Notes: generated from the letters alone by a model not told the origin. A stretch of DNA of 64,000 nt from Thecamonas trahens ATCC 50062 (GCF_000142905.1 NW_013657665.1:186001-250000), one strand, 5' to 3'; positions 2,340 through 50,856 are shown, counted from the first letter of the stretch. Made by a program: numbers and translations.

Positions 2340-3049
2340 NNNNNNNNNNNNNNNNNNNNNNNNNNNNNNNNNNNNNNNNNNNNNNNNNNNNNNNNNNNNN
2401 NNNNNNNNNNNNNNNNNNNNNNNNNNNNNNNNNNNNNNNNNNNNNNNNNNNNNNNNNNNNNNNNNNNNNNNNNNNNNNNNNNNNNNNNNNNNNNNNNNNN
2501 NNNNNNNNNNNNNNNNNNNNNNNNNNNNNNNNNNNNNNNNNNNNNNNNNNNNNNNNNNNNNNNNNNNNNNNNNNNNNNNNNNNNNNNNNNNNNNNNNNNN
2601 NNNNNNNNNNNNNNNNNNNNNNNNNNNNNNNNNNNNNNNNNNNNNNNNNNNNNNNNNNNNNNNNNNNNNNNNNNNNNNNNNNNNNNNNNNNNNNNNNNNN
2701 NNNNNNNNNNNNNNNNNNNNNNNNNNNNNNNNNNNNNNNNNNNNNNNNNNNNNNNNNNNNNNNNNNNNNNNNNNNNNNNNNNNNNNNNNNNNNNNNNNNN
2801 NNNNNNNNNNNNNNNNNNNNNNNNNNNNNNNNNNNNNNNNNNNNNNNNNNNNNNNNNNNNNNNNNNNNNNNNNNNNNNNNNNNNNNNNNNNNNNNNNNNN
2901 NNNNNNNNNNNNNNNNNNNNNNNNNNNNNNNNNNNNNNNNNNNNNNNNNNNNNNNNNNNNNNNNNNNNNNNNNNNNNNNNNNNNNNNNNNNNNNNNNNNN
3001 NNNNNNNNNNNNNNNNNNNNNNNNNNNNNNNNNNNNNNNNNNNNNNNNN
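2340..3049. other. Assembly gap (N-run) flanked by poly-C
   Basis: About 710 N between C homopolymers. Confidence 0.99.
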
Positions 3050-26251: not shown

Positions 26252-29200
26252 TCATTCGGTAAACGTAATCGTCATGGATGACGAGAGCGAGATAACATCG
26301 TCGGCTGGCGATGAAAACTGGTCGATGCGCGGCCGGCGCCGGCGTCTGGCCGACACAGTCTGTGACGACGCGACATCACCCACTACGACCTTGGCGCTGC
26401 CAGCCGCGACAGAGACCGAAAACGAGGTCTCATGCTGGCCTGTCGGCTCGTCGACTGGCCGCCGACGCAGGGTGGCGTGCAGCGGGGAGCTGGCGGCAAA
26501 GATGCCCGACTGCGACGAGGCCACAGAAAGCGTCTCTTCAAAGTCATGAGTCGGTTCGTCGCGCGGGCGGCGGCGCGGCTGCGTCGCCGGTACAAAAGCG
26601 GAAGCAAAACGAGCCACTGGGGCATGGGCATGGGGCACAACTACGGCCGCGTCCTGATGGACGCCCAAAATGCTTGCCTCGTCGGCAACAGCGCCGACGA
26701 CGTCTGTGGCGTCGTCCACGACCGGGACATCGCGCGGACGGCGGAGTCGCGTCGTAGGCACGGTTACAGCACCAACAGCTTCAGTATGGGTGCGCGTTTC
26801 GGTAGTAGCAGCGACACAGGCAGGCTCAGTGAGCGAATCACTCACCTCGATGACGTCCGCGTCACTGGCGGCCAATTCGTCGCGCGGCACACGGCGGCGC
26901 GCTGAGCGGCGGCGAGTGACGTTGGCTGACTGCAAATCGGCAAATCGACGGGATGTGCGCTGAGGGGCATCCGCCTCGATGAGAGGATCCAGTTCGGATT
27001 GGGACGGCAACGCCGCAGGGACGCCAACAGGCTCTGTCGCAGCGTCGACGGGAGCGTCGACTGCGACGATGTCCCGCGGCAGACGCCGCCCAGGGCGGGT
27101 TCGCCGCAGCGGGCGGGTTGGGAGTGAAGCTGGGTTCGGAGTCATCACCATCGGCGGTACGTGCGCCACATGAGCATGAGGAGACGGATGCAGCGTAGCC
27201 GGTGGGTACAAGTGCGGCGAAGCCGGCGCATGAAGGAGTGGCCCGTGAGCAAGCGGGTGGGTGGCGGCCAAAGGCGGAGCATGCACTGGCTTTCTCTGGC
27301 CGGCTTCCTGGTCTTTCAAGTGCCTGGACGAGGTTACCGGGGCAGGCTTCACAAACACCACGTCTGGAACCTCGAGGTACGCCTCTGGAATCTTTGCGGG
27401 CTCGTGGCGATGCCGGCGGAGACGCGACGGGCGTCGGGGGGGCGGTGTCAGGGGAGCAAACGTAGACTCTTCGTCAGATTCGCTCGCGACAACACAGTCG
27501 AGGTCAGCTGTCGAGCCTGGAAGGGCAGCACCATCAACGCCGTTGTTGCCATCAGAGAGCTCTGCATCGGCATGCGGTACACGGCGGCGGAAAGCCACAG
27601 ATTCAGGCTGGTAGCAAGATGATTCGTCTGATACGGTCGACTCGGGAGAAAGGCGTCGCTGCGGACGGCGGAGAGCGACCGCATCAGTGGTGTAAAGTGA
27701 CATCGAGCTGTCGTGATCATCACCAGTCAATCCTCGCGGAGACGACGGTGGCGGCTTGCGCGCGATGACATCCGAGCCGTAGTGCGACGCCTCGAACGGA
27801 GAGTCGGCCTCTGACTCGGTGTACGAGCTCGAACTTGAGTACAAACTCGACGACGAGGACGACGCGGATGTAGGAGAAGAAGGGGACAACATCCGAGTAG
27901 GACGTGAACGGTAGGCAACGCTGTCCGTGCCAGCGTAAAAGGAGAGTTCAGACGTCGGAGACAATGACGAGCGCGTCGACGACGAGCGCGGCTTGAATCC
28001 GGCGGCGTCCTTCGAGTAGGACGACGGCGATGGCTCGTGCCCCGACGACGAGCGCATGGATGACGAGCGCGGCTTGAATCCGGCGGCGTCCTTAGAGTAG
28101 GACGACGGCGGTGGCTCGTGCTCCGACGACGAGTGCGTGGATGACGAGTGCGTGGATGACGAACGCGGCTTGAATCCGGCGGCGTCCTTCGAGTAGGACG
28201 ACGGCGATGGCTCGTGCCCCGACGACGAGCGCATGGATGACGAGCGCGGCTTGAATCCAGCGGCGTCCTTAGAGTAGGACGACGGCGATGGCTCGTGCCC
28301 CGACGACGAGCGCATGGATGACGAGCGCGGCTTGAATCCAGCGGCGTCCTTAGAGTAGGACGACGGCGATGGCTCGTGCTCCGACGACGAGCGCGTGGAT
28401 GACGAGCGCGTCGACGACGAGCGCGGCTTGAATCCAGCGGCGTCCTTAGAGTAGGACGACGGCGATGGCTCGTGCTCCGACGACGAGCGCGTGGATGACG
28501 AGCGCGGCTTGAATCCGGCGGCGTCCTTCGAGTAGGACGACGGCGATGGCTCGTGCTCCGACGACGAGCGCATGGATGACGAGCGCGGCTTGAATCCAGC
28601 GGCGTCCTTAGAGTAGGACGACGGCGATGGCTCGTGCTCCGACGACGAGCGCGTGGATGACGAGCGCGTCGACGACGAGCGCGGCTTGAATCCGGCGGCG
28701 TCCTTCGAGTAGGACGACGGCGAAGGCTCGTGCTCCGACGACGAGCGCGTGGATGACGAGCGCGGCTTGAATCCGGCGGCGTCCTTCGAGTAGGACGACG
28801 GCGATGGCTCGTGCTCCGACGACGAGCGCATGGATGACGAGCGCGGCTTGAATCCAGCGGCGTCCTTAGAGTAGGACGACGGCGATGGCTCGTGCTCCGA
28901 CGACGAGCGCGTGGATGACGAGCGCGTCGACGACGAGCGCGGCTTGAATCCGGCGGCGTCCTTCGAGTAGGACGACGGCTGCGACTCGGTCCCAGCAGCC
29001 CCGGAGCGGGAATGGAAGCCAGCAGCATCATTCGAGTAGGACGACGGCTGCGACTCGCCGGAGTAGCCCTTGAACCCGGCACCATCCGTAGAGTAGGACG
29101 ACGGTCGCGACTCGCCAGACCGGCCCTTGAAGCCAGCAGCATCCGTAGAGTAGGACGACCGCTGCGACTCGTCGGAGTGGCCCTTGAACCCAGCACCATC

Positions 29201-32200
29201 GGTAGAGTAGGACGACGGCTGCGACTCGATCCCAGCAGTCCCGGAGCGGGCATGGAAGCCAGCACCATCCGTAGAGTAGGACGACCGCTGCGACTCGTCG
29301 GAGTGACCCTTGAACCCGGTACCATCCGTAGAGTAGGACGACGGCTGCGACTCGCCAGACCGGCCCTTGAATCCGGTACCATCCGTAGAGTAGGACGACC
29401 GCTGCGACTCGGTCCCAGCAATCCCGGAGCGGGGATGGAAGCCAGCAGCATCCGTAGAGTAGGACGACCGCTGCGACTCGTCGGAGTGGCCCTTGAACCC
29501 GGCACCGTCCGTAGAGTAGGACGACGGCTGCGACTCGCCAGACCGGCCCTTGAAGCCAGCGCCATCCGTAGAGTATGAAGACGGCTGCGACTCGATCCCA
29601 GCAGCCCCGGACGGCCCTTGAACCCGGCACCATCCGTAGAGTAGGACGACTGTCGCGACTCGTCGGAGTGACCCTTGAATCCGGTACCATCCGTAGAGTA
29701 GGACGACGGCTGTGACTCGTCGGACCGGGCCTTGAAGCCAGCAGCATCCGTAGAGTAGGACGACGGCTGCGACTCGGTCCCAGCAGCCCCGGAGCAGGGA
29801 TGGAAGCCAGCAGCATCCGTAGAGTAGGACGACCGCTGCGACTCGTCGGAGTGGCCCTTGAACCCGGCGCCATCGATAGAGTAGGACGACGGCTGCGACT
29901 CGCCGGAGTAGCCCTTGAACCCGGCACCATCCGTAGAGTAGGACGACGGTCGCGACTCNNNNNNNNNNNNNNNNNNNNNNNNNNNNNNNNNNNNNNNNNN
30001 NNNNNNNNNNNNNNNNNNNNNNNNNNNNNNNNNNNNNNNNNNNNNNNNNNNNNNNNNNTTGAACCCGGCACCATCCGTAGAGTATGAAGACGGCTGCGAC
30101 TCGATCCCAGCAGCCCCGGAGCGGGGATGGAAGCCAGCAGCATCCGTAGAGTAGGACGACGGCTGCGACTCGGTCCCAGCAGCCCCGGAGCAGGGATGGA
30201 AGCCAGCAGCATCCGTAGAGTAGGACGACCGCTGCGACTCGTCGGAGTGGCCCTTGAACCCGGCGCCATCGATAGAGTAGGACGACGGCTGCGACTCGCC
30301 GGACCGGGCCTTGAAGCCAGCACCATCCGTAGAGTAGGACGACGGCTGTGTCTCGCCAGACCGGCCCTTGAACCCGGTACCATCCGTAGAGTAGGACGAC
30401 GGCTGCGACTCGGTCCCAGCAGCCCCGGAGCGGGGATGGAAGCCAGCAGCATCCGTAGAGTAGGACGACCGCTGCGACTCGTCGGAGTGGCCCTTGAACC
30501 CGGCGCCATCCGTAGAGTATGAAGACGGCTGCGACTCGATCCCAGCAGCCCCGGAGCGGGGATGGAAGCCAGCAGCATCCGTAGAGTAGGACGACTGTCG
30601 CGACTCGTCGGAGTGACCCTTGAACCCGGCACCGTCCGTAGAGTAGGACGACGGTCGCGACTCGCCAGACCGGCCCTTGAAGCCAGCGCCATCCGTAGAG
30701 TAGGACGACGGCTGCGACTCGCCAGACCGACCCTTGAATCCGGTACCATCCGTAGAGTAGGACGACGGCTGCGACTCGGTCCCAGCAATCCCGGAGCGGG
30801 GATGGAAGCCAGCAGCATCCGTAGAGTAGGACGACCGCTGCGACTCGTCGGAGTGACCCTTGAAGCCAGCGCCATCCGTAGAGTAGGACGACGGCTGCGA
30901 CTCGCCAGACCGACCCTTGAACCCGGCGCCATCCGTAGAGTAGGACGACGGCTGCGACTCGCCGGACCGGCCCTTGAACCCGGCGCCATCGGTAGAGTAT
31001 GAAGACGGCTGCGACTCGCCGGAGTAGCCCTTGAACCCGGCACCATCCGTAGAGTAGGACGACGGCTGCGACTCAGTCCCAGCAATCCCGGAGCGGGGAT
31101 GGAAGCCAGCAGCATCCGTAGAGTAGGACGACCGCTGCGACTCGTCGGAGTGACCCTTGAACCCGGTACCATCCGTAGAGTAGGACGACGGCTGCGACTC
31201 GATCCCAGCAGTCCCGGAGCGGGCATGGAAGCCAGCAGCATCCGTAGAGTAGGACGACGGTCGCGACTCGTCGGACCGGCCCTTGAACCCGGCACCATCC
31301 GTAGAGTAGGACGACGGCTGCGACTCGATCCCAGCAGTCCCGGAGCGGGCATGGAAGCCAGCAGCATCCGTAGAGTAGGACGACGGTCGCGACTCGTCGG
31401 ACCGGCCCTTGAACCCGGCGCCATCCGTAGAGTAGGACGACGGCTGCGACTCGCCGGACCGGCCCTTGAACCCGGCGCCATCGGTAGAGTATGAAGACGG
31501 CTGCGACTCGCCGGAGTAGCCCTTGAACCCGGCACCATCCGTAGAGTAGGACGACGGCTGCGACTCGGTCCCAGCAGCCCCGGAGCGGGAATGGAAGCCA
31601 GCAGCATCATTCGAGTAGGACGACCGCTGCGACTCGCCGGTGTGACCCTTGAACCCGGCACCATCCGTAGAGTATGAAGACGGCTGCGACTCCCCAGACC
31701 GGCCCTTGAACCCGGTACCATCCGTAGAGTAGGACGACGGCTGCGACTCGCCAGACCGACCCTTGAACCCGGTACCATCCGTAGAGTAGGACGACGGCTG
31801 CGACTCGATCCCAGCAGTCCCGGAGCGGGCATGGAAGCCAGCAGCATCATTCGAGTAGGACGACGGCTGCGACTCGCCAGACCGGCCCTTGAATCCGGTA
31901 CCATCCGTAGAGTAGGACGACCGCTGCGACTCGGTCCCAGCAGTCCCGGAGCGGGCATGGAAGCCAGCAGCATCATTCGAGTAGGACGACGGCTGCGACT
32001 CGGTCCCAGCAATCCCGGAGCGGGATGGAAGCCAGCACCATCCGTAGAGTAGGACGACGGCTGCGACTCGCCGGACCAGGCCTTGAAGCCAGCACCATCC
32101 GTAGAGTAGGACGACGGCTGTGTCTCGCCAGACCGGCCCTTGAACCCGGCGCCATCCGCAGAGTAGGACGACGGCTGCGACTCGGTCCCAGCAATCCCGG

Positions 32201-35200
32201 AGCGGACATGGAAGCCAGCACCATCATTCGAGTAGGACGACGACTGCGACTCGTCGGAGTGACCCTTGAACCCGGCGCCATCGGTAGAGTAGGACGACGG
32301 CTGCGACTCGATCCCAGCAGCCCCGGACCGGGCCTTGAACCCGGCACCATCCGTAGAGTAGGACGACGGCTGCGACTCGCCGGACCGGGCCTTGAAGCCA
32401 GCACCATCCGTAGAGTAGGACGACGGCTGCGACTCCCCAGACCGGCCCTTGAACCCGGTACCATCCGTAGAGTAGGACGACGGCTGCGACTCGCCAGACC
32501 GGCCCTTGAATCCGGTACCATCCGTAGAGTAGGACGACGGCTGCGACTCGGTCCCAGCAGTCCCGGAGCGGGCATGGAAGCCAGCAGCATCCATAGAGTA
32601 GGACGACGGTCGCGACTCGTCGGAGTGGCCCTTGAACCCGGCGCCATCGATAGAGTAGGACGACGGCTGCGACTCGATCCCAGCAGTCCCGGAGCGGGCA
32701 TGGAAGCCAGCAGCATCCGTAGAGTAGGACGACCGCTGCGACTCGTCGGAGTGACCCTTGAACCCGGTACCATCCGTAGAGTAGGACGACGGCTGCGACT
32801 CGCCAGACCGGCCCTTGAACCCGGCGCCATCCGCAGAGTAGGACGACGGCTGCGACTCGCCGGAGTAGCCCTTGAACCCGGCACCATCCGTAGAGTAGGA
32901 CGACGGCTGCGACTCGGTCCCAGCAGCCCCGGAGCGGGGATGGAAGCCAGCAGCATCCGTAGAGTAGGACGACGGCTGCGACTCGTCGGAGTGGCCCTTG
33001 AACCCGGCGCCATCGGTAGAGTATGAAGACGGCTGCGACTCGCCGGAGTAGCCCTTGAACCCGGCACCATCCGTAGAGTAGGACGACGGCTGCGACTCGG
33101 TCCCAGCAGCCCCGGAGCGGGGATGGAAGCCAGCAGCATCCGTAGAGTAGGACGACCGCTGCGACTCGTCGGAGTGGCCCTTGAACCCAGCACCATCGGT
33201 AGAGTAGGACGACGGTCGCGACTCGCCAGACCGGCCCTTGAAGCCAGCGCCATCCGTAGAGTAGGACGACGGCTGCGACTCGCCAGACCGACCCTTGAAT
33301 CCGGTACCATCCGTAGAGTAGGACGACGGCTGCGACTCGGTCCCAGCAATCCCGGAGCGGGGATGGAAGCCAGCAGCATCCGTAGAGTAGGACGACGGCT
33401 GCGACTCGCCGGAGTGACCCTTGAACCCGGCACCATCCGTAGAGTAGGACGACGGTCGCGACTCGCCAGACCGGCCCTTGAAGCCAGCGCCATCCGTAGA
33501 GTAGGACGACGGCTGCGACTCGGTCCCAGCAATCCCGGAGCGCGCATGGAAGCCAGCAGCATCATTCGAGTAGGACGACGGCTGCGACTCGCCGGAGTGA
33601 CCCTTGAACCCGGTACCATCCGTAGAGTAGGACGACGGCTGCGACTCGGTCCCAGCAGCCCCGGAGCGGACATGGAAGCCAGCAGCATCCGTAGAGTAGG
33701 ACGACGGCTGCGACTCGCCGGAGTGACCCTTGAACCCGGCACCATCCGTAGAGTAGGACGACGGTCGCGACTCGCCAGACCGGCCCTTGAAGCCAGCGCC
33801 ATCCGTAGAGTAGGAAGACGGCTGTGTCTCGGTCCCATTAGTCCCGGAGCGAGCATGGAAGCCAGCAGCATCCGCCGAGTAGGACGACTGCGGCTGGAAG
33901 GGATGGATCAGAGTTCCAGCACCATCGCTGTGTTGTGACGGTGTTGTCAGAGCTGGGGCAACACGTGCAACTGCATCGGTTCCGTACTCGGATAACGTCT
34001 CGACCGGGAGTAAATCAGAGCCAGACCTGGAATTCGAGTCAGACGAATAGGTCAGCTCGGAGAACGCACCAAAGTCGACACTGTAGCTTGAGCTATATCC
34101 TTCGCTGCTCGCTTCGTCAAGACATGAGCCGTCAGTGACGTATGTCGAGTGTGAGAATGACATGACGGTGGGCTGGCTGGGCTTGGCAAATACAGCTCCA
34201 TCCGTCGAGTACGACGACGGCTGAACGGCAACCTCAGACGACTCGCTCGGCTTGGCAAACCCAGCCTGGTCGGTCGAGTACGACGACGACGCGGCAGCCT
34301 CAGACGACTCGCTCGGCTTGGCGAACCCAGTCTGGTCGGTCGAGTACGACGATGGTGCCGACATGGTCGATGCCGCTGTCTTGGCCTGGAAACCGGCGTG
34401 GTCACCCGAGTATGACGACGGTGCGGCGGAGCTGGTGCTCATCGGCACAAACCCAGCCTGGTCGGTCGAGTACGACGACGACGCGGCAGCCTCAGACGAC
34501 TCGCTCGGCTTGGCAAACCCAGCCTGGTCGGTCGAGTACGACGATGGTGCCGACATGGTCGATGCCGCTGTCTTGGCCTGGAAACCGGCGTGGTCACCCG
34601 AGTATGACGACGGTGCGGCGGAGCTGGTGCTCATCGGCACAAACCCAGCCTGGTCGGTCGAGTACGACGACGACGCGGCAGCCTCAGACGACTCGCTCGG
34701 CTTGGCAAACCCAGCCTGGTCGGTCGAGTATGACGACGACGCGGCAGCCTCAGATGCCTCGCTCGGCTTGGCGAACCCAGTGTGGTCGGTCGAGTACGAC
34801 GACGGCGCGGCAGCCTCGGACGACTCGCTCGGCTTGGCAAACCCAGCTTGGTCGGTCGAGTACGACGACGACGCGGCAGCCTCAGACGACTCGCTCGGCT
34901 TGGCAAACCCAGCCTGGTCGGTCGAGTATGACGACGACGCGGCAGCCTCAGATGCCTCGCTCGGCTTGGCAAACCCAGTCTGGTCGGTCGAGTACGACGA
35001 TGGTGCCGACATGGTCGATGCCGCTGTCTTGGCCTGGAAGCCGGCGTAATCGCCTGAGTACGACGACGGTGCAGCGGAGCTGGCGCTCATCGGCACAAAT
35101 CCAGCCTGGTCGGTCGAGTATGACGACGGCTCAATGGCAGCCTCAGACGACTCGCTCGGCTTGGCGAACCCAGCCGGGTCGGTCGAGTACGACGATGGTG

Positions 35201-38200
35201 CCGACACTGTCGATGCCGCTGTCTTGGCCTGGAAACCAGCATAGTCGCCCGAGTACGACGACGGTGCAGCGGAGCTGGTGCTCATCGGCACAAACCCAGC
35301 CTGGTCGGTCGAGTGCGACGATGGCACCGACGCTGTCGATGCCGCTGTCTTGGCCTGGAAACCAGCGTAATCGCCCGAGTACGACGACGGCGTGGCAGCC
35401 TCGGACGACTCGCTCGGCTGGACAAACCCAGCCTGGTCGGTCGAGTACGACGACGGCGCCGACGCTGTCGATGCCGCTGTCTTGGCGTGAAAGCCAGTAT
35501 GGTCACCTGAGTAGGACGACGGCGCCGACGTGGTCGATACCGTCGTCTTGACCTGGAAGCCGGCGTAGTCGCCCGAGTACGACGACGGTGCAGCGGAGCT
35601 GGTGCTCATCGGTACGAACCCAGCCTGTTCGGTCGAGTACGACGATGGCGCGGCAGCCTCGGACGCCTCGCTCGGCTTGGCGAACCCAGCCTGGTCGGTC
35701 GAGTATGACGACGACGCCGACACTGTCGATGCCGCCGTCTTGGCCTGGAAACCGGCGTAGTCGCCCGAGTACGACGACGGTGCAGCGGAGCTGGTGCTCA
35801 TCGGCACAAACCCAGCCTGGTCGGTCGAGTGCGACGATGGCACCGACGCTGTCGATGCCGCTGTCTTGGCCTGGAAACCAGCGTAATCGCCCGAGTACGA
35901 CGACGGCGTGGCAGCCTCGGACGACTCGCTCGGCTGGACAAACCCAGCCTGGTCGGTCGAGTACGACGATGGTGCCGACATGGTCGATGCCGCTGTCTTG
36001 GCCTGGAAACCGGCGTGGTCACCCGAGTACGACGACGATGCAGCGGAGCTGGTGCTCATCGGCACAAACCCAGCCTGGTCGGTCGAGTACGACGACGGCG
36101 CCGACGCTGTCGATGCTGCTGTCTTGGCCTGGAAACCAGCATAGTCGCCCGAGTACGACGACGGTGCAGCGGAGCTGGTGCTCATCGGCACAAACCCAGC
36201 CTGGTCGGTCGAGTGCGACGATGGCACCGACGCTGTCGATGCCGCTGTCTTGGCCTGGAAACCAGCGTAATCGCCCGAGTACGACGACGGCGTGGCAGCC
36301 TCGGACGACTCGCTCGGCTGGACAAACCCAGCCTGGTCGGTCGAGTACGACGACGGCGCCGACGCTGTCGATGCCGCTGTCTTGGCGTGAAAGCCAGTAT
36401 GGTCACCTGAGTAGGACGACGGCGCCGACGTGGTCGATACCGTCGTCTTGACCTGGAAGCCGGCGTAGTCGCCCGAGTACGACGACGGTGCAGCGGAGCT
36501 GGTGCTCATCGGTACGAACCCAGCCTGTTCGGTCGAGTACGACGATGGCACGGCAGCCTCGGACGCCTCGCTCGGCTTGGCGAACCCAGCCTGGTCGGTC
36601 GAGTATGACGACGACGCCGACACTGTCGATGCCGCCGTCTTGGCCTGGAAACCGGCGTAGTCGCCCGAGTACGACGACGGTGCAGCGGAGCTGGTGCTCA
36701 TCGGCACAAACCCAGCCTGGTCGGTCGAGTGCGACGATGGCACCGACGCTGTCGATGCCGCTGTCTTGGCCTGGAAACCAGCGTAATCGCCCGAGTACGA
36801 CGACGGCGTGGCAGCCTCGGACGACTCGCTCGGCTGGACAAACCCAGCCTGGTCGGTCGAGTACGACGATGGTGCCGACATGGTCGATGCTGCTGTCTTG
36901 GCCTGGAAACCAGCATAGTCGCCCGAGTACGACGACGGTGCAGCGGAGCTGGTGCTCATCGGCACAAACCCAGCCTGGTCGGTCGAGTGCGACGATGGCA
37001 GCGACGCTGTCGATGCCGCTGTCTTGGCCTGAAAACCGGCATAGTCGCCAGAGTACGACGACGATGCACCTGACCCCATGTCCTTCGCCTGGAATCCGGT
37101 AGCATCTGTGTCGTAGCTGCTGGACTTCGCTGCAAGTCGCTCCTGCGCTGCTTGGAGTGCTAACGCAATCGAAGCCTCGGCCTCCGCTGCCACAAGCGCC
37201 TCCGCGTCAGCCTTCATATCCTCAAGGTCATCCACGTTGTCCTCGAGAGCCGCCACGAGCTTGGCGTTGTCGTCAAACACCTCCCCCATGCCTTGTGCCA
37301 GTCGAGTCACCTTCGACTTGACTCCTGCCAGTGAAGCGATCACTCCCGCGCGTCCAATCATATTCGACGTCGCCGCCGGCCCGTGGCCACGCCGTGCCAC
37401 CACATCTGTCCCGTAATCAGATGAGATGGGAGGTGCGGTGCCGCGCTCGGTTACCCCGGCCATAGCATATCCGGGCTCCTGGTCAGACCCATCAGTGCCA
37501 AGGATCTCACTCATGTCGCGACCAGTAAAGTGGCCAACGTCATCCGAGTCAGCTCTAGTCATCATCATCTCCGCATCATGGACATTGGTGGTGATGTCGT
37601 GCACTTTGCTGGCCACAGCCTGTGACGAGCCATGCATCGCAGCCTCCATCCCGCGCACATGGTTGTCCACCAGCTGAAGATACCCCAGTACATCTGCCTC
37701 ATCCGAAAACGTGGGTGTCTCTCCAACCTTGACACACTCCGACGAAGGTTCGCATGCAGGTTGACGCGGCGGCGCCTTGATGACAACTGCATCGGTACCA
37801 TAATTAGACGTGGCCGACCGCTCATCACGATCTGAGCTGGCGGCCAGCACCATGTCCACCGACGTCAACGATAGCGCCGACACTGTCGATACCCCTGTCT
37901 TGGCCTGGAAACCGGCGTGGTCACCCGAGTACGACGACGGTGGAGCGGAGCTGGTGCTCATCGGCACAAACCCAGCCTGGTCGGTCGAGTATGACGACGG
38001 CTCAATGGCAGCCTCGGACGACTCGCTCGGCTTGGCAAACCCAGCCTGGTCGGTCGAGTACAACGATGGCGACGACACTGTCGATGCCGTCGTTTTGGCC
38101 TGGAAACCGGCGTGGTCACCCGAGTACGACGACGGTGGAGCGGAGCTGGTGCTCATCGGCACAAACCCAGCCTGGTCGGTCGAGTACGACGACGACGCGG

Positions 38201-41200: not shown

Positions 41201-44200
41201 GGCCACGGATATGTTGGTCAATCAGGTCAAGGTAGTTGAGCATGTCGCTCTCATGAGTTATGCGCGATGACGAGCTGCTGTATGTTTCAGCTGATGTAGA
41301 AGTCAGCGAGTGTGACTCTGACACAGGCTTCGCGTGGAAGCGTGCATACTCGCCTGAGTACGATGACGGCTCGATGATGTCTTCAGGTGGCTCACTTGGC
41401 TTGGTAAAATCTGCCCTGTCGGTCAGGTGCGATGATGGGGCCGACAACTCCGGCACAGTCGGCTTGGCCACGAAACCAGCTTGGTCGCCCGAATACGACG
41501 ACAGAGGAGTCATGACCTCAGATGACTCGCTCGGTTTGAAAAACTCAAAAGCTTCACCACTGTATGACGACGCCACGGTCTTGGAAGCAAGTCTGTCGAC
41601 ATGATCAAACACAGCAGCCTCGCCGCTGTACGACGATGGCGCTGACACAGTCGACGGCGCAGCTCGTGTCTTGTACCCAGCAGCCTCGCCGCTGTACGAC
41701 GATGGCGCAGCCTCGGACGGCTCACTCCCAGGCGCGTACCCAGCAGCCTCGCCGCTGTACGATGATGGCGCTGACACAGTCGATGGCGCAGTCCGTGCCT
41801 TGTACCCAGCAGCTTCGCCGCTGTACGATGATGGCGCAGTCTCGGACGGCTCGCTCCCAGGCGCGTACCCAGCAGCCTCGCCGCTGTACGATGATGGCGC
41901 AGACACAGTCGACGGTACAGCCCGTTCTTTGTACCCAGTAGCATCGCCGCTGTACGATGATGGCGCTGACACAGTCGATGGCGCAGTCCGTGCCTTGTAC
42001 CCAGCAGCCTCGCCGCTGTACGACGATGGCGCAGCCTCGGACGGCTCACTCCCAGGCGCGTACCCAGCAGCCTCGCCGCTGTACGACGATGGCGCAGCCT
42101 TGGACGGCGCAGCTCGTGCCTTGTACCGAGCAGCCTCGCCGCTGTACGATGATGGCGCAGCCTCGGACGGCTCACTCCCAGGCGCGTACCCAGCAGCTTC
42201 GCCGCTGTACGATGATGGCGCAGCCTCGGACGGCTCACTCCCAGGCGCGTACCCAGCAGCTTCGCCGCTGTACGATGATGGCGCAGCCTCGGACGGCTCG
42301 CTCCCAGGCGCATACCCAGCAGCCTCGCCGCTGTACGATGATGGCGCTGACACAGTCGATGGCGCAGTCCGGGCCTTGTACCCAGCAGCCTCGCCGCTGT
42401 ACGATGATGGCGCAGCCTCGGACGGCTCGCTCCCAGGCGCGTACCCAGCAGCCTCGCCGCTGTACGACGATGGTGCAGCCTCGGACGGCGCAGTCCGTGC
42501 CTTGTACCCAGCAGCCTCGCCGCTGTACGACGATGGCGCAGCCTCGGACGGCTCACTCCCAGGCGCGTACCCAGCAGCCTCGCCGCTGTACGATGATGGC
42601 GCAGACACAGTCGATGGCGCAGTCCGTGCCTTGTACCCAGCAGCTTCGCCGCTGTACGACGATGGCGCAGCCTCGGACGGCTCACTCCCAGGCGCGTACC
42701 CAGCAGCCTCGCCGCTGTACGATGATGGCGCTGACACAGTCGATGGCGCAGTCCGGGCCTTGTACCCAGCAGCTTCGCCGCTGTACGATGATGGCGCTGA
42801 CACAGTCGACGGTGCAGTCCGTGCCTTGTACCCAGCAGCCTCGCCGCTGTACGATGATGGCGCAGACACAGTCGACGGTACAGCCCGTTCTTTGTACCCA
42901 GTAGCATCGCCGCTGTACGATGATGGCGCAGACACAGTCGATCGCGCAGCTCGTGCCTTGTACCCAGTAGCCTCGCCGCTGTACGATGATGGCGCTGACA
43001 CAGTCGATGGCGCAGTCCGGGCCTTGTACCCAGCAGCTTCGCCGCTGTACGATGATGGCGCAGCCTCGGACGGCTCGCTCCCAGGCGCATACCCAGCAGC
43101 CTCGCCGCTGTACGATGATGGCGCTGACACAGTCGATGGCGCAGTCCGGGCCTTGTACCCAGCAGCCTCGCCGCTGTACGATGATGGCGTTGCCTCGGAC
43201 GGCTCGCTCCCAGGCGCGTACCCAGCAGCCTCGCCGCTGTACGATGATGGCGCAGACACAGTCGACGGCGCAGCCCGTGCCTCGTACCCAGCAGCCTCGC
43301 CGCTGTACGATGATAGCGCAGCCTCGGACGGCTCGCTCCCAGGCGCGTACCCAGCAGCCTCGCCGCTGTACGATGATGGCGCAGCCTCGGACGGCTCACT
43401 CCCAGGCGCGTACCCAACAGCATCGCCGCTGTACGATGATGGCGCAGACACAGTCGACGGTGCAGCCCGTGCTTTGTACCCAGTAGCCTCGCCGCTGTAC
43501 GATGATGGCGCAGCCTCGGACGGCTCGCTCCCAGGCGCGTACCCAGCAGCCTCGCCGCTGTACGACGATGGCGGAGACACAGTCGACGGTGCAGCTCGTG
43601 CCTCGTACCCAGCAGCCTCGCCGCTGTACGATGATAGCGCAGCCTCGGACGGCTCGCTCCCAGGCGCGTACCCAGCAGCCTCGCCGCTGTACGATGATAG
43701 CGCAGCCTCGGACGGCTCGCTCCCAGGCGCGTACCCAGCAGCCTCGCCGCTGTACGATGATGGCGCAGCCTCGGACGGCTCACTCCCAGGCGCGTACCCA
43801 ACAGCATCGCCGCTGTACGATGATGGCGCAGACACAGTCGACGGTGCAGCCCGTGCTTTGTACCCAGTAGCCTCGCCGCTGTACGATGATGGCGCAGCCT
43901 CGGACGGCTCGCTCCCAGGCGCGTACCCAGCAGCCTCGCCGCTGTACGACGATGGCGGAGACACAGTCGACGGTGCAGCTCGTGCCTTGTACCCAGCAGC
44001 CTCGCCGCTGTACGATGATGGCGCAGCCTCGGACGGCTCGCTCCCAGGCGCGTACCCAGCAGCCTCGCCACTGTACGATGATGGCGCAGCCTCGGACGGC
44101 TCACTCCCAGGCGCGTACCCAGCAGCTTCGCCGCTGTACGATGATGGCGCAGACACAGTCGATGGCGCAGCTCGTGCCTTGTACCCAGCAGCCTCGCCGC

Positions 44201-47200
44201 TGTACGACGATGGCGCAGCCTCGGACGGCTCACTCCCAGGCGCGTACCCAGCAGCCTCGCCGCTGTACGATGATGGCGCTGACACAGTCGATGGCGCAGT
44301 CCGGGCCTTGTACCCAGCAGCTTCGCCGCTGTACGATGATGGCGCTGACACAGTCGATGGCGCAGCTCGTGCCTTGTACCCAGCAACCTCGCCGCTGTAC
44401 GACGATGGCGCAGCCTCGGACGGCTCACTCCCAGGCGCGTACCCAGCAGCCTCGCCGCTGTACGATGATGGCGCTGACACAGTCGACGGCGCAGCGCGTG
44501 CCTCGTACCCAGCAGCCTCGCCGCTGTACGATGACGGTGCATCCTCGGACGGCTCGTTGCCGGGTGCGTACCCAGCAGCCTCGCCCGTTAGGGATGACAG
44601 CGTTGGATGCCGGCCAGAATTACCAACTGCAGAGCGGTAGATGACGTTGTAGGACGCTTCATACATCGACTCCGTACTACCAGGTGCGCGGTACAGCACC
44701 CTGGCTGATGCATCATAAGACGAGGTGTCAGGTGCTCGGTACTTGATGGAGTATGACGCGTCATACTCAGACGATACGGCATGTGTCGCAGACTTGAAAC
44801 CCTGACCGTTGTCTTGAACGCTACACGGTGGCGGCAGCGACCTCCTGTAAACCACAGCGTCGGTGCCGTATTGGATAGAAGAGGAGATAGTATCCTCGTA
44901 ATCGCCGCTGTGCGATGGCGACAACGCCTCAGTGGCGCCATGCCTGCATGTGAACCCAGTAGCATCGCCGCTGTACGATGATGGCGCTGACACAGTCGAC
45001 GGCGCAGCTCGTGTCTTGTACCCAGCAGCCTCGCCGCTGTACGACGATGGCGCAGCCTCGGACGGCTCGCTCCCAGGCGCGTACCCAGCAGCTTCGCCGC
45101 TGTACGATGATGGCGCTGACACAGTCGATGGCGCAGCTCGTGCCTTGTACCCAGCAGCCTCGTCGCTGTACGATGATGGCGCAGCCTCGGACGGCTCGCT
45201 CCCAGGCGCGTACCCAGCAGCCTCGCCGCTGTACGATGATGGCGTTGCCTCGGACGGCTCACTCCCAGGCGCGTACCCAGCAGCTTCGCCGCTGTACGAT
45301 GATGGCGGAGACACAGTCGACGGTGCAGCCCGTGCTTTGTACCCAGTAGCCTCGCCGCTGTACGATGATGGCGCAGCCTCGGACGGCTCACTCCCAGGCG
45401 CGTACCCAGCAGCCTCGCCGCTGTACGATGATGGTGCAGACACAGTCGACGGCGCAGCTCGTGTCTTGTACCCAGCAGCCTCGCCGCTGTACGACGATGG
45501 CGCAGCCTCGGACGGCTCACTCCCAGGCGCGTACCCAGCAGCCTCGCCGCTGTACGATGATGGCGCAGACACAGTCGATGGCGCAGTCCGTGCCTTGTAC
45601 CCAGCAGCTTCGCCGCTGTACGACGATGGTGCAGCCTCGGAAGGCTCGCTCCCAGGCGCATACCCAGCAGCCTCGCCGCTGTACGACGATGGCGCAGCCT
45701 CGGACGGCGCAGCTCGTGCCTTGTACCCAGCAGCTTCGCCGCTGTACGACGATGGCGCAGCCTCGGACGGCTCACTCCCAGGCGCGTACCCAGCAGCTTC
45801 GCCGCTGTACGATGATGGCGCAGCCTCGGACGGCTCGCTCCCAGGCGCGTACCCAGCAGCCTCGCCGCTGTACGATGATGGCGGAGACACAGTCGATCGC
45901 GCAGCTCGTGCCTTGTACCCAGTAGCATCGCCGCTGTACGATGATGGCGCAGCCTTGGACGGCTCACTCCCAGGCGCGTACCCAGCAGCCTCGCCGCTGT
46001 ACGATGATGGCGCTGACACAGTCGACGGCGCAGCCCGTGCCTCGTACCCAGCAGCCTCGCCGCTGTACGACAACGGTGGCTTAGACTCGCTACCGCCCAA
46101 GGGACCGTTGAACGGTAGCGCGTCCGTACCCCCGTACGATGACGACGACGGCAACGTCTCAGTGCCACCAGAAAGCGTTTGTGCTGGAGATCGCGACCCA
46201 AAGTCACCTGCCGGGTACGCGGAAGTCTCGTCATACGTCGTGCCCGGGACACGAGCATGAACTACGTACCGCGAGTCTGACGCCTCGTCGGCAGGAATGC
46301 GATACGCCACATTTTCGGGCACGTATCGCGACACATCCTCGACATACGAGACCTCGCCGTCAGAGGCGCCCTCGAGTCGGTCCGCAGCATCCTCGAGCCC
46401 AGCAACTCGCGCCTCCATGTCGTCGAGCGCCTCGTCCACGGCGTCCTGTTCGTCAGCAAGCTTCTCGGCCACCCGCCGCGCCATCGAGTCAAACGACTTG
46501 GCCATCTGCCTCACCTGCTCGCGGAGCGCTTCCTCTGGTCGCGTGCTGCTTGTTTCGGACGACTCGTCCGAAAGCACCTGCGTTTGGTGCGGCACGTTGT
46601 CCGTGGCATACACAGATCCTGTCGACAGTGGTGACGCTGTCGACTCTGATGACGACGTTGTCTCCATGAGAGCTGCTGCGATTGCTTCGTCTCCTTTGGC
46701 CACAGCAACCTCGGGTACTTTGTCCGCCATGTACTCGGATGAGACGGTGATCGAAGAGAGAGACTGCAGAGATCCGTACTCATCCGACCCGAATTCGTCT
46801 GACTTGCTCTTGTCCGACCCGTACTCGTACGACTCGTACTCGTACACGCTGCTGTCGCTCCTTGTCTCCTCGCCCGATTCGGTGTACGCAGGATCGAGCA
46901 TGCGAGTCTCCGCGACTCCAGCATCGCTCCCCCGTGGCTTTTGCGTCCTGTAGCGCCACGCATCGCGCTCTTTGGTGGCGATTGCGTCGAGCTCATCTTG
47001 CGATACTGAGCCTGCATGAGGCACAAACGCCCACTGCGACTTGTCCGCAGAACCAGCGCCGTCCATCACAGGAATAAGCAACATTGTCTCATCCTCGGCC
47101 CCGCCCACGCCATGACCATGGCCATTCTCGCCTTCGTCTCCGTGTCCGTGTCGACTCCGTCGCACCCGCCGCCGATGCCTGCCAGCACTACCATGCAGGT

Positions 47201-47594
47201 GGTGCCGGTGGCCATGCAAGTGCCGCCGGGAATGCTGGTGGTGGTGGCGACGATGGTGATGATGATGGCGATGGCCATGATGGCGACGGCCGCCACCGCC
47301 ACCGCTGTGATGACCGCTGTGATGACCGCTGTGATGACCACTGTGATGACCACTGTGCCGATGCCGATGCCGATGGCCGTGATACCGCCGATGACTGTCA
47401 CCTGTGCTGTGTCCGGTACCGTGTCCGTGCCCGTTTCCGTGACGGTGGTACCGCGACGAACGATGCCGCCGTGCCTTGACCCGCCGCACCCGATGCGAGT
47501 CAAGCGAGTGAGCCCGTGACGAGTGCCCTGATCTCACCAGCTCTTGTGATCCATGGAACTGCTCCCACGACTCGGCAGAGCCTGCAGAGTCCAT
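26252..47594 (-). CDS. Giant (~7,100 aa) Ser/Ala-rich tandem-repeat protein with His/Arg-rich N-terminus and coiled-coil spacers (frameshifts near 32023 and 29612, one gap)
   Basis: The 6204-codon ORF reads coherently to ~32023, where a G-run is one base short relative to sister repeats. The same repeat family continues to 28980 and runs into ORF 26252..28831. Start taken at MDSAGSAESW (47594). Confidence 0.85.
27970..28980 (-). repeat. Coding repeat block D: SSYSKDAAGFKPRSSS(M/T)RSSSEHEPSP (81/96-bp units)
   Basis: About 12 near-identical units visible in both DNA and translation. Confidence 0.95.
28980..33890 (-). repeat. Coding repeat block C: SSYSTDGAGFKG(H/R)SGESQP (57 bp) and SSYSTDAAGFHPRSGAAGTESQP (69 bp)
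   Basis: gtagagtaggacgacggctgcgactc recurs every 57/69 bp. Confidence 0.95.
29959..30058. other. Assembly gap (100 N) within repeat block C
   Basis: N-run; the true array length is unknown. Confidence 0.99.
34200..40600 (-). repeat. Coding repeat block B: SSYSTDQAGF.../SSYSGDYAGFQAKT... (60-69-bp units), interrupted by non-repeat sequence at ~37060-37900
   Basis: cctggtcggtcgagtacgacga recurs; 453-bp and 900-bp higher-order periods. Confidence 0.95.
41620..46080 (-). repeat. Coding repeat block A: SSYSGEAAGY(APGSEPSEAAP|KARAAPSTVSAP) (63/66-bp units), interrupted at ~44590-44950
   Basis: tacccagcagcctcgccgctgtacga recurs every 63/66 bp. Confidence 0.95.
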
Positions 47595-47761
47595 ATGCCA
47601 AGTGCCTTGTTGCCGACCTACCCCATTTCCACGCCCACCCACTCCGTCTATCTGTAAGTATCCCCATGTCCCTTCCCCGTCAACACAACAAGCAACAGTC
47701 CAGCAGCTTGCCAGGGAGAAACAGGAAAAGGGAAGAGGAGGGCGAGGGCGAGGGCGAGGGC

Positions 47762-47792
<31 letters not shown>

Positions 47793-47793
47793 G

Positions 47794-47893
47794 NNNNNNN
47801 NNNNNNNNNNNNNNNNNNNNNNNNNNNNNNNNNNNNNNNNNNNNNNNNNNNNNNNNNNNNNNNNNNNNNNNNNNNNNNNNNNNNNNNNNNNNN
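47794..47893. other. Assembly gap (100 N) between poly-G and poly-A tracts
   Basis: N-run. Confidence 0.99.
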
Positions 47894-48732
47894 TAAAAAA
47901 AAGAAAAAAAAAAGAAAAAAGAAAAAAAAAAAAAAAAAAAAAAACGTGCTGTGCTTTTCAAAAAAAAAGCTGTTGGGAGTAGGGAGTAAAAGTGAGGGAG
48001 GAGGAATGAAAAAAAGTAAAATGCCTTCGAGTAGGAATGAGCAAGGGTAGATGGGGGAGTCCCTCCGCCCACCACCCCCCCCCCACCCCCACCCCCACTT
48101 TGCACTACCACTAGCCATTCCCTCCTTCCTCCACCCTTCTTCTCCCTACCCACTACCACCACTACCATCCCTGCTACTCCCTTTTCCCTTTTTTCCCTCT
48201 CAACATACTACAGGACAGAGAGCAGGTTGGCTCTGTGAGTGACCACATAGACTACACACACCCGCTGGACTACCACCCGCCAGCGACATACCGCACAGAT
48301 TCCTCCGCCACTGTGTGCGACACACACACCCTTTTCTTCCATATCCTTCACTCACTCACTCACACTCATTCAATCATTCATTTCATTCTCCCATCATATT
48401 CCCAATCGATTCCCGCAATCACCGTATCCCCCCCCCCTCCCCCTCTCCATTCAACTCTCCTTCAGCTAACCGCCGCCCGCCACGGTCACCTTACCCTCCT
48501 CCACACCCGCCACTGTCACCCGCGACCACGTTGGAGCACCCCACTCCCACTCCTTCCACCACCACCACACACTTCCCCCCACCACCACTACCTACACTCC
48601 GCCCCATACCCACACCCTTTCCCCCCACCCACACCCCCCTCTTCCCCCCACACCCTCCCTTACGTATGTCCAATCTCTTCCTCCCCCCAACCCCCCCTGC
48701 CATTTGCCCAACCCATGCCGCTGGCCGTTGCC

Positions 48733-48800
48733 GAACGAACGAACAAACGAACGAACAAACGAACGAACGAACGAACGAACGAACGAACGAACGAACGAAC
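48733..48800. repeat. (GAAC)n microsatellite
   Basis: gaacgaacgaacaaac..., about 17 units. Confidence 0.92.
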
Positions 48801-49039
48801 CAATGATTTTTCGTTCGGTGGCCATCATGGTCCCCTCCCTCCCCCCCCCCCTCCCTCCTTCCCTCCTCCCCCCCCTCCCCCCCTCCCCCTCCCTTCCCCC
48901 GCCCCTCCCTCTCCCTGCCCATGCCACCTTTGCATGTCAAGACCACCACCACCACCACCCCCTCTCCCTCCCGTACTCACTCTGTCATGTTGACAGTGGT
49001 TGTTGTGGCCGAAGAAAAACCAAGCCAAGGAAGACTGAC

Positions 49040-50856
49040 ATGTCGTCAACCATGTCGTCGTCATCCTCCTCGTCCTCGTCCTCGTCCTCGCCATCGTCGT
49101 ACTCGTCCTCGCCGGTGGTTGAGCCGTCTTACACGGAACAACAGGAAAAGGTCCGGCGTAGGAAGACTGTGAAGAAGACAAAGAAGAAGAAGACGACAAA
49201 GGTCAAGTCCAAGTCGGGCAAGGGCAAGTCGGGCAAGAGCAAGTCGGGCAAGAGCAAGTCGGGCAAGGGCAAGTCGCTCAAGCGCGTTTACCACTCGTCG
49301 GGTGGCTTCTCGTACGAGTACCAGACCGATACCCGCTCCGGTGATGCGTCGTCGTCGGCTTCGGCCGCAGACTCGGCCGACGTGGCCGAGCTCCGTGCGC
49401 GGATGCGTGCTCTGGAGGACCAGCTCGCAGAGGCCACCATGGGCCACGGAACCCAGGCTGATCGCGTGGAGAAGGACATTTCGCAGCTGCAGGCGCTCAT
49501 TGCCGCCAAGACCCGCGACGGTGGCATCAATGGCTCGGACGGCCTCCCGCCCGTCAAGCGCAAGCGCCGCATTGTGCGTCATGCCTCGGGCTCGTCGTCC
49601 GGCTCGCTCTACGAGCTGATCAAGCTCCGCAAGCCGCCGACCTACTCGTACTCGTACTCCCCAGCCCATTCCTCGTCGTTCCGCGCTGACCCTCGGTTCT
49701 CGTCGTCGGACACAGGCGCATCATCTGCCTCGGACCGCCGCTACCGCAACGACTTTGCCGAGTTTGACGCCGACAAGGTCGGCCTCAACTATCGCTCCGA
49801 CTTTGCCGGCTTTGACGACGACAAGCTGGATCCCAACTACCATGGCGACTTTGCCGACTTTGCCGCAGACAAGGCCGGTGCCAACTACCGCACTGACTTT
49901 GCAGACTTTGACGCCGACAAGGCCGGGCCCACAAACTACAACTCCGACTTTGCCGTCTTTGCGAAAAGCTGGAAGAAGAGGTCCTCGACCACGCCGGTGC
50001 TCCGCCACCGTCAGACTCGGAGGAGGACATTGTCTGGAACAAATACGCCAAGGACTACGTCAAGTACGTTCCGCGCCGCAAGAAGTACCGTGTCCGCAAG
50101 CGCCCCAAGGTTTACTCGTACTCGGCCAGCCGCTCGTCGTCGTCGTCGTCCTCCTCCTCCTCCTCCTCCTCCTCGTACTCGTACTCGTCGTCCAACTCAG
50201 AGCTCGAGCGTCAGTTCCGCAAGCTCGCCAAGAAGTTCGACGCCCTCAACCACCAGCTCGCCTACGCCCTCGATGACCGCGACCGCCGCGTCGACGCCTA
50301 CGAGGAGGACATTGCCGCTCTTGAGGCCCAGCTCCGCCAGATGCAGCTGCAGGCCCAGATGCTCGCCATGGAGCCGACCTACTCGTACTCGTACACTTAC
50401 GAAACGTACTCGTACACCTACTCGGACTACGAGGCCCTGCCGCGCCGCGGCCGTCGTCGTATGCGCGTTGTCGCAGCCCCGTCTTACGATCGCCGTCGCC
50501 GCCGCGACATGGCCGTTGTCCTCCGCGGCGACCTCTCCGAGCGTTCCTTCGCCTCCACCTCGCGCCGCTCAGCAAAGGCCGTTCCCGACGACCTCGATGC
50601 TCGCCTCGCCGCCCTCCAGGCCAAGTTTGGCGCCATCGAGAAGAAGATCGCAGAGACAGACGCCGAGTACCGTGAGCAGGCCGACTACTTTGACCACCGC
50701 CTCAAGGAGGCCGACTCGCGGGCCGAAAAGGTCGAGAAGCTCGCCCACGGCTCGTCTGCAAAGTCGTCCAAGGCCAAGGCCAAGGGCAAGGCCAAAAAGG
50801 GCAAGGCCAAGAAGAGCAAGACCAAGAAGGGCAAGACCAAGAAGAGCAAGAAGTAA
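49040..50856 (+). CDS. Ser/Lys/Tyr-rich coiled-coil protein with five YxxDFAxF repeats (frameshift near 49965; possible upstream exon)
   Basis: ORF 48704 is protein-like from MSSTM to ...NSDFAVFAK. Adding one A at gcgaaaagct gives KLEEEVLDHAG...WNKYAKDYVKY, continuing into ORF 50341..50856 (coiled coil, KKGKAK tail). Confidence 0.8.

Follow-up and report, generated by a model that had tools for sequence, protein, structure and literature searches.

The 64-kb stretch of Thecamonas trahens DNA analysed here, which we call the window (C15:186001-250000, from an assembly of 28.7 Mb in 131 contigs), contains two genes arranged head-to-head, both of whose products carry tandem arrays of short, tyrosine-containing modules. 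The first, which we will call the giant gene, lies on the minus strand (26255..47594, with its ATG at 47594 and its stop codon at 26252-26254) and has a conceptual product of ~7,100 amino acids (aa), as obtained by translation and by tracing the motif from one reading frame to the next. A regular-expression count finds at least 242 modules of the form S-S-Y-S-x-[DE]-x-A-G-[FY] in this protein, spaced 19-27 aa apart. The second gene, its neighbour, lies on the plus strand (49040..50856), encodes ~605 aa and contains only five modules, of the form N-Y-x-x-D-F-A-x-F-D-x-D-K (49739..49966, plus strand). The first in-frame ATGs of the two genes, at 47594 and 49040, are 1,446 nt apart, and each gene is single-copy in the genome. 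One subfamily of the giant modules and the five neighbour modules have a core in common, Y-x-x-D-aromatic-A-x-F, and it is the significance of this core that concerns us here.

The giant protein is organized as a succession of module blocks flanked by non-repetitive ends (all on the minus strand). It begins with a region of 498 aa (46101..47594) that has a His/Arg/Gly-rich tract, the Tyr-alternating sequence VYEYESYEY and a helical, coiled-coil-like segment at ~46365-46547; a Pfam scan of this region gave only weak coiled-coil noise (here, as in every protein search, the frames or exons were used as separate pieces). Block A (41580..46079) contains ~66 SSYSGEAAGY modules with a period of 21-22 aa (Tandem Repeats Finder (TRF) periods 63/129/192) and is interrupted by one 149-aa non-repeat insert at ~44520-44978. 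After a helical spacer (spacer 1, 40641..41390) comes block B1 (37935..40652), where SSYSTDQAGF and SSYSGDYAGF modules alternate with a period of 20-23 aa and are grouped into a 453-nt (7-module) super-repeat with 94% matches. A second helical spacer (spacer 2, 37113..37934), which comparison of the translations identifies as a duplicate of the first (51% identity), leads into block B2 (34160..37124), a second SSYSTDQAGF/SSYSGDYAGF array recognized both by motif count and by TRF. No copies of the spacers were found elsewhere in the genome, and a sequence search of the PDB revealed no relatives of spacer 2. Block C (29000..33890) is composed of SSYSTDGAGF and SSYSTDAAGF modules with a period of 19/23 aa, and it holds both of the frameshifts of the giant gene as well as a run of Ns (29959-30058). 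As this gap interrupts the block, with the same module type on either side of it, the module number given above is a lower bound; the run of 100 Ns being a placeholder, the fact that the frame seems to continue on the far side is uninformative. Block D (28000..28990) has 12 SSYSKDAAGF modules separated by Ser/Arg-rich linkers (period 27/32 aa; 258-nt super-repeat with 97% matches by TRF). The non-repetitive C-terminal tail of ~570-590 aa (26255..27960) has no Pfam match. A degenerate motif, Y-x-[TS]-D-[ASV]-[VI], occurs in it three times, and motifs resembling R-R-x-P-R-D occur six times. The latter, Arg-rich and of the form R-R-(R)-x-P-R-D-[EVI], are distributed over 26347-27088 at intervals of ~35-60 residues and constitute a second, unexplained motif family.

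With respect to composition, the giant arrays have 1.4-7% aliphatic residues, 22-38% Ser and ~3-4% Gln, with flexible Ser/Ala/Pro/Glu linkers between the modules. The whole protein has 235 [GS]Y[GS] triplets, a net charge of ~-270 and almost no cysteine (none at all in the N-terminal 498 aa). An AlphaFold2 model of an 8-module piece, computed with 29 paralogous segments as the alignment, had a predicted local distance difference test (pLDDT) score of 42 and no secondary structure, and the giant, whose composition is also typical of disordered sequence, is predicted to be almost wholly disordered. Its three short helical segments could mediate oligomerisation. No signal peptide or membrane segment was found in either the giant or the neighbour, there being no 19-residue window that is hydrophobic enough.

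The neighbour protein starts with poly-Ser, has Lys-rich tracts towards either end and contains Tyr/Ser-alternating tracts and three coiled-coil-like helical segments; its net charge is ~+39. The cores of its five modules are YRNDFAEF, YRSDFAGF, YHGDFADF, YRTDFADF and YNSDFAVF (49742-49960); in our alignment of these modules (A1) the Y, D, F, A and F are invariant, the period is 16-17 aa, and TRF reports a 48-nt array over them. The first of the helices (residues 108-162; 49361..49525, plus strand) is the sole confident part of the AlphaFold2 model, with a pLDDT of 72-84. The module region has a pLDDT of ~50, and the protein is predicted to be largely disordered. Downstream of the modules there is a strongly basic motif, DYVKYVP-RRKKYRVRKRPKVYSYSAS (50053..50130, plus strand). 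The remainder of the translation (50200..50856, plus strand) comprises the second and third helical segments, a Tyr-alternating tract (50377-50433) and a Lys-rich C-terminal tail, and yields Pfam hits only of the coiled-coil type. One of the Pfam matches in the C-terminal half, to the FlxA-like family (PF14282; residues 61-132, window 50140-50360, plus strand), scores 34.3 bits against a gathering score of 26.3 bits, but the match extends over a run of Ser residues and the coiled coil that comes after it, and so is probably compositional. No paralogs of this C-terminal half were found in the genome. A sequence-only reading of the same DNA had drawn attention to the SSYSGDYAGF and SSYSTDQAGF repeats of the giant, the five neighbour repeats at 49739-49960, the divergent ATGs ~1.4 kb apart, the Tyr-alternating, basic and helical segments of both proteins and an assembly gap between the genes, and all of these features are recovered in our analysis.

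Considering how short the common core is, the essential question is whether the two types of module resemble each other beyond chance. When the giant modules (alignment A2) and the neighbour modules (A1) are compared as profiles by hhalign, they align in register, with the Y, D, A and F matched (score 15.6, probability 57%), and none of 400 column shuffles attains this score (mean 6.2, standard deviation 1.8, maximum 14.3). A similar comparison with nine neighbour-type modules, the four intact ones of an ortholog (described below) having been added, gives a score of 14.4, which is reached by none of 500 shuffles (maximum 13.75), and the reversed control scores 5.6. Scored with an ungapped position-specific scoring matrix (PSSM) made from the giant modules and ranked against 45,773 background positions, four of the five neighbour modules fall within the top 1e-4 and the remaining one lies at 8e-4; the summed score of the five beats 2,000 residue shuffles. 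A six-frame search of the genome with A2 was saturated by the giant's own copies. Of the 32 codon-level occurrences of Y-x-x-D-[FY]-A-x-F in the genome, 24 belong to the giant and 5 to the neighbour, the other 3 being singletons; the reversed control occurs once. A looser pattern, which excludes most of the giant Ser codons, revealed no other tandem array in the genome; its sole other non-singleton match is a pair of Y-T-A-D-S-A-x-F sequences 684 nt apart on another contig (C57:4277-4300 and 4961-4984, plus strand), which may perhaps be the repeated domain of an unrelated gene. Beyond the modules, the helical segment at 46365-46547 (minus strand) in the giant and the second coil of the neighbour (50200-50330, plus strand) have 36% identity over 45 residues, with a BLASTP E = 0.004 in a single comparison, a likeness that we consider marginal. 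Overall, the module likeness appears to be real but weak, and would fit either an ancient partial duplication or a functional constraint common to both types of module. Judged by the standards of ordinary searches, the giant and neighbour modules are not one family.

Neither gene can be read in a single frame from the assembled sequence. The giant frame runs from 47594 to ~32030, a second one from there to ~29615 and a third to the stop codon, with 5,187, 803 and 1,121 stop-free codons respectively. At both of the frame switches (32022-32024 and 29609-29619) a 23-codon unit measures 68 nt instead of 69, one base being missing from a C/G run in comparison with the sibling units. The neighbour has two frames (49040-49966 and 49963-50856, with a stop codon after 50856), separated by a 1-nt frameshift in the sequence GAAAAG (an A4 run at 49966-49971), and because of this shift YSYSYTYETYSYTY and DLDARLAALQAK, which the sequence-only reading had quoted, are found in the other frame of the same gene. 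The gene for the genome's SAXO homolog, discussed below, also appears to be split between frames. Since each of the three frameshifts in the pair is a single-base homopolymer change, and since the SAXO gene is split as well, they are best regarded as systematic assembly errors. In the case of the neighbour there is direct comparative information: a word-index protein search with part A of this protein found one relative, P0001, with 48% identity. This is encoded on a Logan contig (L006, 1,286 bp, run SRR23274481) with a GC content of 49%, as opposed to the window's ~63%. The contig holds five N/G-Y-x-x-D-F-A-x-F modules followed by a basic motif nearly identical to that at 50053-50130 of the window, and its reading frame continues past the point equivalent to the frameshift at 49966. 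The neighbour modules are thus conserved across species and, because the ortholog reads through the position concerned and conserves the downstream sequence, the frameshift at 49966 is almost certainly an assembly error. The third module of the ortholog contains a 49-nt GT-AG intron (895-943 of L006), and the window gene has no intron at this place.

The codons of the giant modules give further information about coding status. In 231 module cores the mean entropy is 0.41, 0.52 and 1.20 at codon positions 1, 2 and 3, and the conserved Ser at position 4 of the module is encoded by TCN in 165 copies and by AGY, mostly AGC, in 64. This third-position variability and the mixture of the two types of Ser codon imply that the modules are protein-coding and under selection as protein. 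The frameshifts and gaps would then be errors of assembly in homopolymers and repeats (almost certainly so for that at 49966) and not signs of pseudogenisation, and the sequence evidence indicates that both genes are real.

The divergent intergenic region (47595..49039) has long C/T-rich tracts, an (ACGA)n microsatellite at ~48735-48800 and an N gap (47794-47893) that sits between a poly-G run and a poly-A run. Read on the giant coding strand, the sequence upstream of the ATG at 47594 consists of poly-T, the gap, poly-C and then a C/T-rich tract ending in YAG. Similar pyrimidine tracts (poly-T, poly-C and C/T-rich) ending in YAG precede both of the ATGs, at 47660-48100 on the minus strand and 48400-49000 on the plus strand. 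The tracts may represent 5' introns, one in each gene, that of the giant spanning the gap. The region as a whole is a candidate shared promoter, which may also hold these 5' introns, and introns in both genes could place the transcription starts nearer to each other. As to the rest of the window, its DNA is eukaryotic, with long uninterrupted open reading frames; the other genes around the pair encode ankyrin/RING, ZW10, MatE, tyrosine phosphatase and Sushi/Big_5/TIG receptor proteins; and, in addition to the two N runs already mentioned, there is one at 2340-3049.

Searches for relatives were almost entirely negative. A word-index protein search found nothing for a 300-aa piece of block B and only the query itself for part B of the neighbour. 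An exhaustive HMMER search of 1.84 billion representative proteins, made with a 1,150-aa piece of the giant that covers spacer 1 and block B1, returned three weak matches (E 1e-6 to 4e-4); we have rejected these as kin, as they are unrelated repeat proteins without the module. The ESM Atlas feature search with the neighbour gave no usable match, and a search of the PDB with the neighbour-module profile gave nothing meaningful. Within the searches made, the giant thus appears to be an orphan and the neighbour to have one known ortholog.

The sequence-only reading had also proposed that the modules resemble the tubulin-binding Mn motif of the MAP6/SAXO proteins, a proposal that our comparisons do not bear out. 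Two features define the family (PMC3280300): a cysteine motif at the N-terminus and Mn-like repeats of 15 aa in which a T/S and an F/Y, six positions apart, are conserved. The corresponding Pfam model (SAXO1-2, PF05217; cut-off 26.5 bits) matched none of nine pieces of the two proteins, even at E <= 10, and a six-frame search of the genome with it found a single contig (C48, 39 bits) and nothing in the window. The locus on this contig is a real SAXO homolog (G000:C48:85500-86820; loci L007-L011, with open reading frames at 1174-2253 and 1809-2660 of L008, minus strand), which begins with a Cys cluster and carries P-F-E-G-E / D-F-V-P modules in repeated copies; its split between frames is probably another homopolymer error of the assembly. 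From the presence of a SAXO gene it follows that the organism is a flagellated protist. With the eight SAXO modules of this same genome, the giant modules produce no alignment by hhalign (score 4.2, probability 0.1%) and the neighbour modules align over five columns only, centred on D-F (score 11.2, probability 15%). Moreover, the N-terminal cysteine cluster is absent from both proteins, the giant having no Cys in its first 498 aa and the neighbour a poly-Ser, Lys-rich start. Membership of the MAP6/SAXO family is therefore rejected, there being no PF05217 match, no Cys cluster and no likeness to the Mn-like modules. What the pair does have in common with this family is the use of tandem short motifs with Ser/Thr, acidic and aromatic residues, and one of the SAXO modules here is Y-x-x-D-Y. 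However, the P-F-x-G-E and D-[FY]-[VP]-P context in which the genome's SAXO modules are set is not found in the pair, and the giant is acidic and ~15-20 times longer. Microtubule binding by either protein is neither supported nor excluded by these comparisons.

How then might such a pair function? The reading that we favour, tentatively and with slightly less than even confidence, is that these are two divergent genes for intracellular, disordered motif-array proteins, one an acidic scaffold and the other its basic coiled-coil partner. The aromatic-acidic modules would be multivalent docking or 'sticker' motifs, which either bind one common partner or associate with each other. Through them the acidic giant could form an extended scaffold or gel, for which the small, basic, coiled-coil neighbour would serve as adaptor or cross-linker, both genes perhaps being expressed from a shared divergent promoter. 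The opposite net charges of the proteins (~-270 for the giant versus ~+39 for the neighbour) also make an electrostatic association conceivable. We infer binding, assembly, localisation and co-regulation from the sequences, and any cytoskeletal role for the pair is speculation. A bolder proposal, which we think unlikely, is that of a lineage-specific two-component system in which a giant with ~250 copies of an undescribed linear motif and a basic partner bearing the same motif would, by means of a new motif-receptor or motif-motif interaction, assemble or coat some periodic structure inside the cell, for example a layer beneath the membrane or a flagellar-root lattice.

Several observations weigh against the scaffold-and-partner reading. 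The adjacency of the two genes is the result of scaffolding across the gap at 47794-47893, the contig that carries the ortholog does not extend far enough to reveal whether the ortholog adjoins a giant gene, and the 5' end of the giant is uncertain, so that a first exon upstream of the ATG at 47594 is conceivable. Only 4-5 of the ~8 constrained positions agree between the module types; the neighbour modules are without the S-S-x-S frame and mostly without Gly; the hhalign probabilities are only 45-57%; and the PSSM scores of the five neighbour modules range from -16 to +6 bits and are mostly negative. Hmmsearch with a 13-column hidden Markov model of the giant module gave the neighbour -20.8 and -11.3 bits, no better than 4,000 shuffles, a miss that we judge to come from the cost of local alignment and from composition correction on a very short model, and the reciprocal six-frame genome search with A1 returned only itself and did not detect the giant. 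The earlier claim of a module shared in the same register consequently stands with respect to hhalign, the ungapped PSSM and the genome pattern count, but fails in the comparison of the HMMER model with shuffled sequence. The same failures, together with the negative PSSM scores, would favour a coincidence or convergence, in which unrelated low-complexity proteins rich in Tyr, Ser, Asp and Phe happen to lie side by side and have a four- to five-residue core without common origin or function. Outside the modules, a wider collinear comparison of the neighbour with the giant N-terminus is not significant (hhalign P = 0.2), leaving only the one coil match, and helical heptads often give such coiled-coil matches by chance; moreover, the shared pattern was defined after both proteins had been seen. 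Nevertheless, chance has difficulty with the column shuffles that never reach the observed scores, with the position of the neighbour modules in the extreme tail of the PSSM background, with the near absence of the exact pattern from the rest of the 28.7 Mb and with the fact that the sole two array-bearing genes are adjacent and divergent. On balance we regard coincidence as somewhat unlikely, if well worth bearing in mind.

The remaining alternatives concern what the giant is for, or whether it is a gene at all. The view of the sequence-only reading, that the modules are lattice-binding repeats on flagellar-root microtubules or on a submembrane pellicle, in the manner of the Mn modules of MAP6/SAXO or, as we would add, of the trypanosome repetitive microtubule-associated proteins, fits a flagellate genome with a SAXO gene, the regular module spacing of 19-27 aa and two proteins without signal peptides; the Lys-rich tracts of the neighbour could bind acidic tubulin tails, and Y-K-R-D-Y occurs in one of the modules of the SAXO protein encoded in this genome. 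Nonetheless, we consider it distinctly unlikely, given the missing PF05217 match and Cys cluster, the poor comparisons with the local SAXO modules and the strong acidity of the giant, typical lattice-binding repeats being basic. In protists, giant tandem-repeat proteins rich in Ser are frequently extracellular, and the giant could instead be an adhesive or coat protein rich in Ser/Thr (mucin- or cement-like), secreted or exposed at the surface, whose signal peptide is on an exon in or beyond the 47794-47893 gap and whose neighbour is functionally unrelated. The high Ser content with regularly placed Tyr, the uncertain 5' end and the putative pyrimidine-rich intron running into the gap would all be compatible with this. 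It is, however, improbable in our opinion: neither a signal peptide nor an anchor is encoded in the available sequence, there is hardly any cysteine and extracellular domains are lacking, the His/Arg-rich N-terminus and helical spacers look cytoplasmic, and the motif-sharing neighbour is clearly non-secretory. Finally, a 24-kb stretch broken by three frameshifts and by two gaps might suggest a decaying pseudogene or a mis-assembled satellite with real frameshifts. Yet each of these shifts is a single base in a homopolymer and the SAXO gene is frame-split too, the modules have a strong third-position and synonymous codon signature, the giant's frame segments have ~5,200, 800 and 1,100 stop-free codons, and what follows the neighbour frameshift is conserved in the ortholog, all of which makes such decay very improbable indeed.

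Among previously described proteins, several offer partial parallels. The trypanosome MARP-1/2 proteins are high-molecular-weight repetitive microtubule-associated proteins with 38-aa tandem repeats whose microtubule binding has been shown. Like the giant, they are very large, intracellular protist proteins with tens to hundreds of near-identical short repeats and non-repetitive ends; the repeat length and motif are different, and the likeness is one of description only. The [G/S]Y[G/S] domains of the FUS family resemble the giant in a different way: it has 235 such triplets, evenly spaced aromatics, a Ser-rich and aliphatic-poor composition and predicted disorder. By analogy, these features suggest a multivalent weak association of the giant, the likeness being in mechanism only. 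Unlike the FUS-family domains, however, the giant has Asp or Glu in every module, a net charge of ~-270 and a fixed 10-residue motif in place of degenerate triplets, and it is not Gln/Asn/Gly-rich; in addition, it has no RNA-binding domains and is >30 times longer. We have accordingly not assigned it to the FUS-like class of Tyr low-complexity proteins, as the triplets are present but the arrays are net acidic with ~3-4% Gln. The articulins, epiplasmins and alveolins, structural proteins of the protist membrane skeleton, are, like our pair, lineage-restricted, repeat-built and without signal peptides, but their repeats are Val/Pro-rich or Glu/Lys/Ile/Val-rich and beta-prone and have no motif likeness to those of the pair.

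For the annotation of this genome, the consequences are that the two gene models should be corrected for three homopolymer frameshifts and two gaps, and that the MAP6/SAXO annotation should not be transferred to either gene. The articulins, epiplasmins and alveolins would become the nearest analogy if a pellicle function proves to be correct. Giant repeat proteins restricted to one lineage are a common feature of protists and, should the shared motif turn out not to serve in interaction, the giant would be one more lineage-restricted low-complexity tandem-repeat protein. If, on the other hand, the motif does function in interaction, the giant would represent an extreme of natural multivalency, with ~240 motif copies on one polypeptide, and the pair would offer a testable entry to a protist-specific intracellular structure without known components.

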